DNA of 64,000 bases from Oopsacas minuta (taxonomy: Eukaryota > Animalia > Porifera): contig JAKMXF010000144.1 of NCBI GenBank assembly GCA_024704765.1, positions 372,001 through 436,000 on the forward strand, in the 5' to 3' direction. This document shows positions 58,367-64,000 of this stretch, piece by piece. The translations under genes were made by a program, and so were the position numbers. Position 1 is the stretch's first letter; every line of letters starts with the position of its first letter. The notes under the pieces are model-generated. The model searched no databases, had not been told where the DNA came from, and was given only the letters and a program-made list of their open reading frames with translations.

Positions 58367-58448
58367 TCTCAAACTAACGAAATACAATGCAAACACATAA
58401 AAACTAAAATCGCTCTGATGGCTGAACTAACTAAACAATGACGAAACC

Positions 58449-58450
58449 AA

Positions 58451-58497
<47 letters not shown>

Positions 58498-58500
58498 ATA
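58449..58500. repeat. (AAAT)n microsatellite
   Basis: About 13 units between the MPPED stop and the ESF1 start. Confidence 0.95.
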
Positions 58501-58507
58501 TCTACAT

Positions 58508-59431
58508 CTATAATACAACATCACTCTTCACTGTGTTCTGTATGTCGAACACTACAGGAGGATTAAGAGGCTTATAATGCAGGTTACAAGTAGAAGCGTT
58601 AATATAAGTAGTATATCCATCTGTAGTGACGCCATACGCTTCATGAATATGTCCGAATATATGATATCTTGGCTTTACTCGCTCTCTAACGGTTTTTAAC
58701 AACTCAACACATCCAGATCGTATCCCACCCTTAGTTAGGTCTCCTTGTCCAACAGGGGGACCATGAGTAACTAACACGTCGATATCCTCGGGGATCTGGT
58801 CCCACTTTTTCAGAATTGCACCTCCTCGGATCAAATTGAAGCCCCAGTTCTGGAACTCTGGTTGCCATGGAGACCCAAATATTTTAAATCCTAACACCTC
58901 AACACCACAATCTTCTAAATAAATACAATTCCGTAAAGACTGCTTTATCTCTGAAGAATTGTATTTTTTCGGATGACTAAAGGTGGACCAAAGCAAATGC
59001 GAATATTTATCAGTCTCAAAGCTAATATCATGATTCCCTGCTATAACTATCTTATATTTATGAGGCAATCGGCCTAAGAATTCATTAAACTTTGTAACTT
59101 CTTGAGGCAATCCTCTTTGTGTAAAATCTCCCGCGTGTATTAGCACATCTCCTGAGGGGATATCGAGTGTATCGGTTTTACCGTGAGTATCAGAAATACA
59201 TACAAATCTAGTGGACCCTTCAGGTATATCTGATGGTGCTATAGGCTGTACAACTTTGTCTGAGTTAACTTTAACTTTAAGTATGCTCCATGATTTTGTG
59301 GGGTTATCAGTGTATTTATATACCTGTATACTGGATGTACCAGCTCTAGGCGGGATAGGAATTAGATCTGGAATATTAGATTGGAAATAGAATGAAATAT
59401 CATCTGAAGGGTTTTGGTGCTTAGAAGCCAT
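58508..59431 (-). CDS. Metallophosphoesterase MPPED1/2-like
   Basis: FVCISDTH, HAGDFT, IAGNHD, FGSPWQP, LVTHGPP and HIFGHIHE.YG. Confidence 0.93.
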   Translation of the reverse strand: MASKHQNPSDDISFYFQSNIPDLIPIPPRAGTSSIQVYKYTDNPTKSWSILKVKVNSDKVVQPIAPSDIPEGSTRFVCISDTHGKTDTLDIPSGDVLIHAGDFTQRGLPQEVTKFNEFLGRLPHKYKIVIAGNHDISFETDKYSHLLWSTFSHPKKYNSSEIKQSLRNCIYLEDCGVEVLGFKIFGSPWQPEFQNWGFNLIRGGAILKKWDQIPEDIDVLVTHGPPVGQGDLTKGGIRSGCVELLKTVRERVKPRYHIFGHIHEAYGVTTDGYTTYINASTCNLHYKPLNPPVVFDIQNTVKSDVVL

Positions 59432-59791: not shown

Positions 59792-62700
59792 TTACTTGGC
59801 ACGGCTCGATCTAGTAATTCTTGTACTGTAAGATCGCGTGGATGTTCTCACCAGAGGCTTAGGGGGAGAATCTGCGGATTTTGTCGCTACAAGCTTACTG
59901 GGAGAGAGGGCGAATGAAACTGTAGCGGCTCTTGTGCGTCCAACTTCATTTATCACTCGTTTGGAGTTAGATAACTTTGGGGCCATCGGAGAGAGATTCA
60001 AGGTTACTTTATTCTTAGCTTGGGGTTGGGAAACCTGTCGTCTTGACAGAATTTTGAGAATACCCTTTACTTCTGTTTGCTTTTCACTTCTCAAAACTCT
60101 CTTATTTATAGGAGAGGGAGGTGATAGGCTATCAATCTTTGAAGGTGGTTGAGTTTTCACTGCAACAGGCTTTGTACTCGTAGCATTCCTTTGTCTCAAT
60201 ATCCTCACTGGGGGAGGAGATGGAGAAGATTCCATTTTAGGGATAGGAGGCTTAGCTTTCCCCATTGGTGAAAAAATCCTTGCAGATCTCACAAGTTTTG
60301 CTTTATGTGTTGTAACAGTAGATTTCACAGATTTCTTAGCCATAGAAGAAGTGTTTCTGTTAGAAATTCTGTTCCTAGTTATCCTAACGGGGAGAGGAGA
60401 GGGAGAGAGGGGTTTTATTTTAGTCCTGATCATGAAGGGGGAGGTGCTTGGAGATTTGGGGGGACTGACTATGATAACTTTAGCTGGTGATGACGGAGCG
60501 TTTTTATTGACAACTCGCTTTTTGACTTCTCTCGTTTTCTCTACTTGAGCTCCTCTCCTCGTGACTCTAGTCTCCCGTAGGACAAGAGGAGATACCTCTG
60601 GGGGCTCATGGGTATTAGGTCGAGGTGCTTTAGAGGGAGTCTTCCTGCTACTCTTCTGAGCAGCCCCTCGTAAATGTGACAATAACGGTGTAGGAGGAGA
60701 TTTGAATAGATCAGACAAGAATATCTCCTCTGGTTTTGAAGGAGTGTGTACAGGCTTAATCCGTGGGGTTCTGAACAGGTAAGGATAGAATGTGTCCTCT
60801 GGTTGAGCGGAGTGTTTTTTACGTGGAGTCCTCTCTTTAGGGAGAGAAGCAGTGCGTTTACGTCTCAGCTGAGGGACAGAAGGAGAGTCCTGTGGTGCAG
60901 ATGTGGCTCGCCTGGTACTACGAGGGGATACAGGAGTGTTGAAGAGAGATGGTCTGAAGTTAGACTCTAAGTCTGTAACCTTAATCTTAGGAGTATCAAA
61001 TAGCCGAGGATTGAATACATCCTGGTCCCGTAAGGATCTTCGTGAAGGAGGTCGAGGGGTGTCGGCATGGGTATGATTCTCAACACTCTTTGATACTCTT
61101 ACAGATGTGTTGAGAGGAGCTACTCGAGGGGTGAGCGAGCGTGTACATGTTGGGGACACCCAAGCCAGACGGAGAACTTTAGAGCTAACGAGAGATCTAC
61201 CACGACGGGGGGATTTTGGAAGCGGAGAGCTCCTATTAGAGCGGGGACTAGCTACACGAGCAGATAGAGGAGTAGCAGTTATGTTATTGGTACTAGGGGT
61301 TGATATATATGATCTTGGAGTCCTAGCTTTTAGTTTGGGAGTACTATCATGAACTATTGACCTCTCAAACTCTGAGCTAACCAGAGGATGGCTAATCTGT
61401 ACATGAGAAGTATTTCTAACAGCTCTCTTAGCTGATGAGCTTCTGCTTACTTGGGTATCTGTCTGATTGGTGGATGATCTTGATCTGAGGCCAGGAGACT
61501 TAGATTTACTATTTGATGGAGTATGAACAGCTGGAGATTTGTTCGATATAGCAGAAGATTTACTTTGAATAGCTGGAGGTTTCGCTTCAACAGTTTGAAT
61601 AGTTGGAGATCTAAGCGAATAAATATGAGAATCCTTTGGAATAGCTGGTGACTTTGAAACAGCTGGAGACTTCTTTGAAACAGCTGGAGACTTCTTTGAA
61701 ACAGCTGGAGAGTTCTTTGAAACAGCTGGAGAGTTCTTTAAGACAGCTGGAGATTTCTTTGAAATAGCTGGAGATTTGTTCGATAGAGCAGGAGATTTCA
61801 CCTCAACTGATTGAACAGCTGGAGATTTACTAGTTGAGGAGATAGATTTTGATTGAACAGCTGATCCATAAGAATCATGCACTGGGGTGACAACTTGATG
61901 CTTCAGGCCAGACAGTGGAGGAGACTGGAATAAATCTGGAGATTTAGAAAGACGCTGAGACATTCTAAAAGGAGATTCAAGAGAAATTTTTCTAGATTGT
62001 TCAGTTAGTTTAGGAAGAATACCAGCCTCAGGAGTCTTACGAATCATCTTGGGAGTGGTTTTGGGGCTGTTAATAGCCCTGACAATTGACTGATTAGAAC
62101 TAGGAGATAATTTCACTGTATCAGGGGTAGTTATTTGTGAAGAGGAAAGGTCCAGTGATTTAGATTTACGTGGTAGACTAATTCTAGTAGGAGCAGGATA
62201 GTTTTGGAGTGGAGACATAGTATGTCTCTTCTTTGCTGATTGTTGAAATTCTAATTCACCAGATTTGTTGCTAGGGGAGACTGATGTACCTTTTGGACTT
62301 AACAACTGGTCAGGAGATTTGGAACCCAGTCTAGGAGAAGTTATTAGCAGAGAAGCCTTGGCTTGTTGGGCTAAGTTAGAAACATTATTTCTCTTGAATA
62401 AAGTACGAGTTTCTCGAGCTGACAACTTACTAGGGAGCTTGGAATGTATAGAAGTTGGTGTGGATATACGTGAAGAGAGCTTCAAGTTATGAGATTCTTT
62501 CATTTCAGATAGGACAGCACTCCTTAGTCCTCTCCTTAACATAGTCTCACTAGTCATTGACTTGACTGGTAGGGACTTTGTCTCTTTCAATGGAGTTATA
62601 GTTTTTCCTACTTTTGGTGATTTTGGAGTGGAAAATTGGTTTTTGGATAGAGATTGTCTGGGAGAGAGTTTGGGTGAGTTCTGGAGTCTGTTTGGAGTGG

Positions 62701-64000
62701 TGAATTTGGCTTTAGGAGATAATTTAGAGAATTGTGTTGCTACTGAGAGGGGGAGCTTATAGGGGGTAGATCTCCTGAGAACTGCTTTAGTAGCAGATCG
62801 AGTTATAGGAGTACCACCTCGTTTAACTGGAGTACTAGGGGGCAGGTTACGACAGAATTCCTCTGGAGAGAGGGAGGGTCCAAACCTAACACTCTTACGA
62901 CTAGATAGAGTGAGAGGAGACCTTGATCGGCGAGCAGATAGACCTGTAGAGTTCGGATGTTTGTAAGTAGACGGGTACTTCTTGGGTGTGCTAATAGGAG
63001 GAGAGGTCTTAAGAGACTCTCTGGGAGATTTCCTGAGATAGGATTTAGAAGGAGACTTCTGAGGTGTCTGCTGGGTACGTGTAGATCTCCTCAGACCAGA
63101 ATTATTTGGAGAATCCTAGATATACATAGAATTATTATACATAGACCGTGAACGAAATTCACACTATGACGTCATTGTTAACTCACCATTTTGTGGTCAG
63201 AAAATCTGGGAGATATCCTAACGAAAGTAATAGGAGCACTTTTACGCTTCAACTTGACAGGAGATGATATTGTCTCCTTAGGGAAGTCTGACAAACGTCT
63301 CTTCTCTGTGGATGGCTCTACCGATACATTCATTGTAGTACTCATGTCACGAGCAATCAAGCTAGGCTGTGAAGTATTTACTTCCATACTAGCATAGCTG
63401 TTATCAGTAGCATCGTGTGTGGCGCTTCTGCTATCTGATGCTGATAATGGAGTAGTGGATCTCTTGGTATTAGCTGGAGTAGAAGATTGTGTGGGAGACG
63501 AGTACGTGACATATTTTCTAGGTGATGGAGGGATGTTACTACCCCCTGGAGATGAGTGCGGACTGATTTGTTTTCTGGGAGAACTACGAATTGAAAGTCT
63601 GTCAACTTTAGGAGATTTGGCGGGACTTAGTGGATAAATTGTCTCTAGGTCAGCTGACTTTTCAAGATCCTCTAAAACTTCATCAATTTGAGACAGATTG
63701 GATGACGTAATAGCATCAGATAGTTTAGCCTTAGGATAACCAGGCTTGTATTCTACTCTGAAGTTCTTCCCTGCTACATGTATGACATCTAAATTCTCTA
63801 AGGGGTGTAGTGTTTTGATAGTTAGAGTAGTATTGTTCAGAAGACAGGGATTGCCAGAACTGAAGTTTATAACAAATATGTTCCCCAAAGAATCAACTAT
63901 AAGCGAGCAATGTTTTGGTTCAGCAAAGAACATTCTCAAGTCTGAGTCTACGTCACTACCCATAGCTATCTGGTCGTAAGGAGTGATCTGGTTGCCTAGC
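59792..64000 (-). CDS. MKI67: Ki-67-like protein (FHA + PP1-docking motif + basic disordered tail), 5'-truncated by the window edge; exons >=64000-63187 and 63115-59792
   Basis: The FHA-like segment contains HC.L.V....V.NFSSGNP.L.N and DVI.V....FR.E. ATG|GTGAGT at 63186 joins tctag|GAT at 63115 (phase 0), putting RKSVRFGPSLSPEEFCRNLPPSTPVKRGGTP in frame with the 932-aa S/P/K/R-rich ORF. Confidence 0.75.
61640..61797 (-). repeat. 21-bp coding repeat (SPAVSKK-like heptads)
   Basis: KSPALSNKSPAISKKSPAVLKNSPAVSKNSPAVSKKSPAVSKKSPAVSK-SPA. Confidence 0.85.

Follow-up and report, generated by a model that had tools for sequence, protein, structure and literature searches.

A probable glass-sponge member of the Ki-67 family in Oopsacas minuta, with a remodelled FHA domain and a conserved PP1-docking module

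The segments through which Ki-67 and Repo-Man (CDCA2) dock protein phosphatase 1 (PP1) have been defined at the molecular level (Kumar et al. 2016; PMC5005033). They comprise an RVxF site, which reads RVSF in Ki-67 and RVTF in Repo-Man, a Phi-Phi pair, EL and EV respectively, and the KiR-SLiM, a motif of the form FDxxLP(P/A)N(T/S)PL(R/K)(R/K)Gx(T/S)P that was found only in these two proteins. Docking is controlled by phosphorylation: modification by cyclin-dependent kinase (CDK) 1 at three S/T-P positions of Repo-Man blocks PP1 binding, and Aurora B phosphorylates a residue within the RVxF site itself (Ki-67 S507, Repo-Man T394) (PMC5005033). Repo-Man is probably a duplicate of Ki-67 (PMC8354752). 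Ki-67-like proteins have recently been reported in tunicates, sponges, molluscs, insects, cnidarians and even fungi, in a preprint of June 2026 whose homologue search began from FHA-based database entries; its Table 1 lists a protein of the demosponge Amphimedon queenslandica (A0A1X7VPY3) of 1208 residues, with an isoelectric point (pI) of 11.71 and a Pfam PP1 motif at 219-270 (10.64898/2026.06.18.733134). Here we describe a gene on the minus strand of a 64,000-nucleotide stretch of contig JAKMXF010000144.1 (hereafter the window, to whose positions all coordinates refer) of the glass sponge Oopsacas minuta (Hexactinellida; PMC10280926), assembly GCA_024704765.1 (Santini et al. 2023, as given in PMC10542158). 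The gene joins an N-terminal FHA domain to a PP1-docking module and a long basic tail, and we put the probability that it is a glass-sponge member of the Ki-67 family at about 0.8. An earlier note on this DNA, made from its letters, had proposed a Ki-67-like architecture in an early-branching animal; the animal is indeed a glass sponge, and Pfam, profile and structure matches bear out the three-part arrangement. That sponges have a Ki-67 homologue is already reported in the preprint, a circumstance that the note had said would lower the novelty of the find, and the present gene adds to this a member from the Hexactinellida with a cryptic, remodelled FHA domain.

The gene is represented in the public annotation by protein P0001 (1418 residues), and its main parts lie in the window as follows.
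63187..64000, minus strand: exon 1, in-window part; an open frame identical to P0001 residues 61-331.
63730..63999, minus strand: FHA domain, in-window part (P0001 residues 61-150), identified by Pfam, profile and AlphaFold2 (AF2)/Foldseek matches.
63116..63186, minus strand: intron 1, 71 nucleotides, GT..AG, phase 0; read from the sequence, removed in P0001 and skipped by one read contig.
59792..63115, minus strand: exon 2, 1107 codons plus stop in one open frame; by translation and composition a basic, S/T-P-rich, disorder-type tail.
62807..62899, minus strand: PP1-docking module with an RVxF site (KSVRF), ...SPEEF and the KiR-SLiM-like FCRNLPPSTPVKRGGTP, identified by Pfam, PDB matches and a consensus count.

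From 63999 down to 63187 the minus strand reads as an open frame that ends AAA ATG and is followed by the consensus donor GTGAGT; if the intron is retained, a TAA is reached three codons past the end of exon 1. The acceptor, TATATCTAG|GAT, is a polypyrimidine-rich AG site, and P0001 joins the two exons at ...SDHKM|DSPNN..., precisely the junction that the earlier note had proposed. Both strings that it had quoted, NFSSGNP from the FHA domain and RKSVRFGPSLSPEEFCRNLPPSTPVKRGGTP, are present. The peptide MGSD... is not the N-terminus, the FHA domain being cut by the window edge: upstream DNA read in locus L001 puts the coding start at L001:8001, 179 nucleotides outside the window, and the first 60 residues of P0001 are encoded beyond the edge. 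The note's remark that the open reading frame (ORF) list hides the gene is correct: the long ORF in that mechanically produced list opens with TTG 62590, whereas the PP1 motif (62899-62807) lies upstream of this point and has no start codon before it in its frame within exon 2. In the public annotation the gene is not hidden, as the public protein already joins the exons. Ki-67 is nowhere mentioned in the O. minuta genome paper.

Read evidence for the splice was taken from Logan contigs, in which the locus is present in four runs (X1-X4), all from one sample and one study; none of the runs found is recorded as RNA. Runs X1-X3 are DNA-like, with long contigs colinear with the genome and Nextera-type adaptor remnants, and the contigs of X4 are short, deep and number in the hundreds, with TruSeq-type adaptor and loose ends in A-runs. 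One X4 contig omits exactly the 71 nucleotides 63116-63186, which read CT..AC on the plus strand and hence GT..AG on the strand of the gene. The libraries of the genome paper (RNA-seq, DNA-seq and Nextera mate-pair) are consistent with this pattern, and X4 is a probable RNA run. The splicing of intron 1 is supported as real, by one contig that carries no information on quantity. P0001 removes a second intron, a 60-nucleotide in-frame GTAAGT..TTAG stretch, and so lacks 20 codons of the open frame. The read contigs covering the locus contain no joint there, and in three sponge relatives the frame continues across it, with some of the residues conserved (...KR..VS.L...). We take the second intron of P0001 to be doubtful: the 60 nucleotides probably either code for protein or are spliced out optionally, in frame. 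The gene has two exons, possibly three.

The PP1-docking module is found about 250 residues downstream of the FHA domain. Residues 73-112 of exon 2 match Pfam PP1_bind (PF15276) with a score of 46.7 bits, the curated cutoff being 27, and the PDB peptide matches are the CDCA2:PP1 complex 5IOH (E 3.7e-7) and the Ki-67:PP1 complex 5J28 (E 1.1e-4), together with 5INB. The RVxF site, KSVRF, fits [RK]-x(0,1)-[VI]-{P}-[FW], and 11 of the 14 specified positions of the KiR-SLiM are matched, the changes being D to C, N to S and L to V. The match is about 40 residues long and continues into AVL[RK][RK][ST], which is shared with python Ki-67. As compared with Repo-Man, the segment is much the same and all three CDK S/T-P positions are kept, as LSPEEF, STPV and GGTP; CDCA2, unlike the sponge protein with its conserved N-terminal FHA domain, has no FHA. 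As compared with vertebrate Ki-67, the sponge has the same sequence of RVxF site and KiR-SLiM followed by a long basic, S/T-P-rich disordered region, but differs in that the second residue of the Phi-Phi pair is Glu (EE) and the 'x' of RVxF is Arg rather than Ser. Arg is found there in all four sponge sequences, and because it is non-phosphorylatable the Aurora B switch could not act at this position. A word-based protein search with the PP1 region returned only three close sponge relatives.

The FHA domain is less readily recognized. It scores 20.6 bits against Pfam FHA (PF00498) on the in-window part and 21.8 bits with the complete N-terminus, for a cutoff of 20.7; residues 25-60, comprising the first beta-strand and most of a 24-residue insert specific to glass sponges, lie outside the window. 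The insert follows the first strand and is absent from the decapod and python proteins introduced below. A single-sequence search of the PDB gave non-significant matches (Ki-67, E 0.15; CHFR, E 1.3), and in a word-based protein search the FHA region of P0001 retrieved nothing but P0001 itself. A profile of four sponge FHA sequences matched the human Ki-67 FHA domain (2AFF, 1R21) at E 0.0099 and, with E allowed up to 10, no further FHA domain of the PDB. When the FHA-only sponge profile was searched exhaustively against 1.84 billion (1.84e9) representative proteins, ten matches were obtained at E up to 0.001: three from glass sponges, three spurious repeat proteins and four true FHA proteins. 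The spurious ones (P0007, P0008 and P0012) are multi-repeat matches, to bacterial-type beta-propeller and Ig-like repeat proteins, and were rejected as FHA relatives. Outside the glass sponges, the only true FHA matches with E < 1e-4 are three decapod proteins (P0009-P0011; E 3e-6 to 7e-5; 1191-2989 residues), in each of which an N-terminal FHA domain is followed about 60 residues later by PP1_bind. One of them carries the NCBI name 'proliferation marker protein Ki-67-like', and its FHA domain matches that of human Ki-67 at E 1.3e-22, the next family being CHFR at 2.4e-4. The domain does not cluster with another family: its sole FHA match in the PDB is human Ki-67, and its best true FHA matches outside the glass sponges combine FHA with PP1_bind. 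A query made from the FHA domain alone thus picks out proteins that have the PP1 module independently, which favours common descent of the entire architecture over convergence.

Two side observations concern these relatives. The naming of the family in public databases is inconsistent: the decapod proteins P0009 and P0011 have a clear FHA domain and PP1_bind, yet are called 'proteoglycan 4-like' and 'serine/arginine repetitive matrix protein 2-like'. A 539-residue protein from a 26.7-kb ENA contig (P0013) has a Ki-67-type FHA loop, NYSSTNPCILNG, an RVxF-like site (KRISFG) and repeated LKTP...AI..RR units, has no Pfam PP1_bind match, and may be a distant Ki-67-like protein.

A link to vertebrate Ki-67 can also be drawn directly. 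BLASTP of P0001 against Ki-67 of Python bivittatus (P0023) gives two colinear matches, to the FHA domain (1e-4) and to the PP1 site (2e-6); the python protein carries FHA, K167R (PF08065) and PP1_bind, and the decapod proteins do not have PF08065. Like the vertebrate proteins (human 1R21/2AFF and 5J28; python P0023), the sponge FHA domain has the N-x-S-S-x-N-P loop and the F-R-x-E-Y end of the subtype. An AF2 model built from a 12-sequence alignment has an FHA fold with a pLDDT (predicted local distance difference test score) of 76, an earlier and poor model from a 4-sequence alignment (pLDDT 52.6) having been discarded, and its top Foldseek match is the Ki-67 FHA domain 2AFF, with a root-mean-square deviation of 1.3 A over 78 columns. 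The modelled structure confirms the FHA fold and leaves the subtype undiscriminated. Taken together, the sequence matches support an FHA domain of the Ki-67 subtype, for which the link is strongest through the decapod intermediates and the direct signal is weak.

According to the general literature on FHA domains, it is the Arg and Ser at the positions of human Ki-67 R31 and S45 that contact the phosphate of phosphothreonine. In the sponge these residues are replaced, by Ser for R31 and by Glu for S45, whilst H48 and the loop Asn are retained. All five glass-sponge sequences read G-S and E-P-K-H where the decapod and python proteins read G-R and S-x-x-H, so that neither the Gly-Arg nor the Ser-x-x-His of a canonical phosphothreonine-binding FHA domain is found. 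With these two residues exchanged, it is doubtful that phosphopeptides are read canonically, and the glass-sponge FHA domain probably does not read phosphothreonine in the usual manner.

The remainder of the protein is best described by its composition and by short conserved elements. Those that lie in the window, with the 60-nucleotide stretch discussed above, are given here.
63361..63417, minus strand: 19-residue linker motif HDATDNSYASMEVNTSQPS between the FHA domain and the PP1 site (columns H255-S273 of alignment A1).
62371..62430, minus strand: 60-nucleotide in-frame GTAAGT..TTAG stretch, removed as a second intron by P0001.
61634..61799, minus strand: 21-nucleotide tandem repeat in seven copies, encoding KSPAVSK heptads (Tandem Repeats Finder and translation).
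60695..61015, minus strand: four spaced [ED][ED]-x-F-x-P-x-LF-x-[TS]P motifs (regular-expression matches in blocks conserved in sponge relatives).
59792..59824, minus strand: C-terminal basic tail ...TRITRSSRAK plus stop (translation).

The earlier note had described more than 1000 residues of basic, S/T-P-rich disorder, and this description is sound. Exon 2 has a pI of 11.76, carries a net charge of +159 and contains 81 S/T-P sites. For P0001 as a whole the pI is 11.07 and the net charge +155, with 95 S/T-P sites at a density of one per 15 residues; 71% of its residues are disorder-promoting, and a charge-hydropathy comparison puts it on the disordered side of the boundary, disorder being judged by composition alone. 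The pI, S/T-P content and charge agree with the features listed for Ki-67 homologues in the preprint (10.64898/2026.06.18.733134). After the PP1 module the tail runs for about 1000 residues, very basic, dense in S/T-P and of disorder type, to an arginine-rich end such as is also found in vertebrate Ki-67. Its last residues resemble those of the sponge relatives (...RATRAK, ...RASRAK), of decapod proteins (...RRTRAQK, ...RRTRARK) and of python Ki-67 (...GRTRASKRIRK), a likeness to which no statistic is attached. By pattern, several [LV]R-x(1,2)-R motifs, candidates for the C-terminal LR chromatin-binding domain of vertebrate Ki-67, are present in the last 270 residues, and there are no Pfam matches in residues 1140-1418. 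The sponge protein is less than half as long as vertebrate Ki-67 and has no K167R repeats. It resembles the non-vertebrate homologues, namely the decapod proteins and, by the table values of the preprint, the Amphimedon protein, which combine FHA and PP1_bind with no K167R and are highly basic and S/T-P-dense with internal short repeats over about 1200-3000 residues; it differs from them in its strongly diverged FHA domain and in coming from another sponge class than Amphimedon. The four LF-x-TP motifs resemble by eye the human Ki-67 motif ...EDLAGFKELFQTP (PMC8354752). Their standing as a minimal Ki-67 repeat stays at resemblance, since K167R gave no match and a hidden Markov model (HMM) of the motif found none either.

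Conservation among glass sponges extends well beyond the two domains. Relatives of exon 2 were found at 44-51% identity in three ENA assemblies (loci L002-L004), and directly upstream in each is an ORF that starts MQP... and encodes the same FHA domain; a fifth FHA exon or ORF, P0006, was recovered by the exhaustive library search. The FHA block shows 87% mean column identity over four aligned sequences. Between it and the PP1 site, the linker motif HDATDNSYASMEVNTSQPS is near-invariant in all four aligned sponge sequences though its flanks are poorly conserved, and it matched no known motif. Further conserved islands in the disordered part are VLRRSTPYK after the PP1 module, LKLSSRISTPTS, the four LF-x-TP motifs and SSPAKV, and the number of KSPAVSK heptads varies among the relatives.

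As judged from sequence, the gene has each of the features by which the Ki-67 family is broadly recognized, namely an FHA domain of the Ki-67 subtype, an RVxF site with KiR-SLiM downstream of it and a long basic, S/T-P-dense disordered region. A number of observations nevertheless weigh against placing it there. The direct similarity of its FHA domain to that of Ki-67 is weak (15-19 bits), the Pfam FHA score is barely above the cutoff and falls below it for the relative P0006, other FHA domains stand close behind Ki-67 in the Foldseek search (many within tenfold of the top E-value), and the phosphothreonine contacts are replaced. Neither the whole of exon 2 nor its sub-regions matched Pfam K167R at E up to 10, and an HMM of the LF-x-TP motif, based on 14 instances from sponges, found nothing significant in the python or decapod Ki-67-like proteins. 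Some of these points would suit a lineage-specific FHA protein that gained a PP1-docking motif by convergence and is no orthologue of Ki-67, since short linear motifs can converge, the disordered tail has no alignable similarity to that of vertebrate Ki-67, and the direct FHA match to human Ki-67 is weak (E 0.15 for the single sequence and 0.0099 for the profile, as above). We regard convergence as very unlikely: an FHA-only query retrieved proteins that also carry PP1_bind, in the same order, which would be unexpected if the parts were unrelated; the resemblance at the PP1 site covers some 40 residues and 11 of 14 KiR-SLiM positions, with AVL[RK][RK][ST] as in python Ki-67; and in the published search the KiR-SLiM was found only in Ki-67 and Repo-Man (PMC5005033). 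Still less probable, and scarcely credible, is a gene-model artefact in which separate FHA and PP1-binding genes have been fused across 71 nucleotides that are no intron. The splice is seen in a single contig of X4, a run with no recorded type, and prokaryote-style gene calls on L002-L004 do give two ORFs; against this, exon 2 offers no in-frame start codon upstream of the PP1 motif, the junction is in phase 0 with a consensus donor and a polypyrimidine-rich acceptor, the RNA-guided public annotation joins the exons, their adjacency is kept in four loci, and the homologues found all have both domains in one protein.

A closer competitor accepts that the gene is a true relative of Ki-67 and Repo-Man and questions what it does, holding that it is mainly a chromatin-bound PP1-targeting scaffold, a mitotic-exit phosphatase subunit in the manner of Repo-Man, and not a surfactant, with an FHA domain that is degenerate or repurposed. 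The PP1 module is the best-conserved part of the protein and scores better against CDCA2 than against Ki-67, itself a point against a plain Ki-67 assignment, though the decapod Ki-67-like protein behaves likewise; the phosphate-binding residues of the FHA domain are lost, the Ki-67 repeats are lacking, and at about 1400 residues the protein is nearer in length to Repo-Man (1023 residues) than to human Ki-67 (3256 residues) (PMC5005033). However, the fold and sequence of the FHA domain are strongly conserved over five sponge genomes, which implies that it is under selection, and the charge, S/T-P density and disorder fit those of Ki-67 homologues. The two functions are, moreover, not exclusive, as human Ki-67 performs both. 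A mainly Repo-Man-like role is, in our view, rather unlikely.

With a duplication of Ki-67 as the probable origin of Repo-Man, the sponge gene would predate the split between the two and most likely stands as a co-orthologue of both; a literature search for an analysis of Ki-67/Repo-Man paralogy returned nothing specific. If the sponge protein works as its relatives do, a surfactant or perichromosomal function would follow by analogy. The basic tail and its C-terminal [LV]R..R motifs would bind chromatin or nucleic acid, and the extended charged chain would coat the chromosomes. In mitosis, phosphorylation by CDK at the roughly 95 S/T-P sites may reverse the net charge of +155, and the three phosphorylated S/T-P sites of the PP1 module would block PP1 until CDK activity falls, as in Repo-Man. 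PP1 would thereby be delivered to chromatin at mitotic exit.

The surroundings of the gene are also conserved. In four assemblies the order is a kinase-RCC1 gene, the Ki-67-like gene, a metallophosphoesterase gene and an M20 peptidase gene. Upstream and beyond the window (L001:2552-7778; L002-L004:1-3900) are found a large gene with kinase and RCC1 repeats and a small gene with a CMIP6 domain. Directly downstream of the Ki-67-like gene, at 58508-59431 on the minus strand, is an intron-less 307-residue metallophosphoesterase gene (Pfam Metallophos), the same neighbour being found in all three related loci. Simple repeats of TTTA type at 58369-58524 separate it from an ESF1-like gene on the minus strand and are responsible for a YLFIYLFI... 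pseudo-ORF in the ORF list.

Glass sponges are syncytial and are among the most gene-poor and cytologically unusual of animal lineages. If the assignment to the Ki-67 family is correct, the layout of FHA domain, PP1 dock and basic tail has been retained even there, and the gene provides a hexactinellid data point for the recently proposed deep origin of Ki-67. It also shows how database-driven surveys can miss such members, whose FHA domain lies at or below the Pfam threshold: precomputed Pfam tags P0001 with PP1_bind alone, its FHA domain being too diverged for that annotation, and a search starting from FHA-based entries, such as that of the preprint, would probably miss it. A bolder proposal, which we advance tentatively and consider rather improbable, is that the FHA domain, remodelled by the replacement of its phosphate-binding Arg and Ser and by the conserved 24-residue insert yet under strong purifying selection, would have a non-canonical, phospho-independent partner in this syncytial lineage, and that the four conserved LF-x-TP motifs are the ancestral seed of the vertebrate Ki-67 motif (EDLAGFKELFQTP); were this true, all four Ki-67 modules (FHA, PP1 dock, Ki-67 motif and basic C-terminal tail) would be as old as the animals themselves. 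For the family as a whole, the replaced phosphothreonine-binding residues and the missing Aurora B site are concrete, testable differences with which to ask which features of Ki-67 are ancestral.

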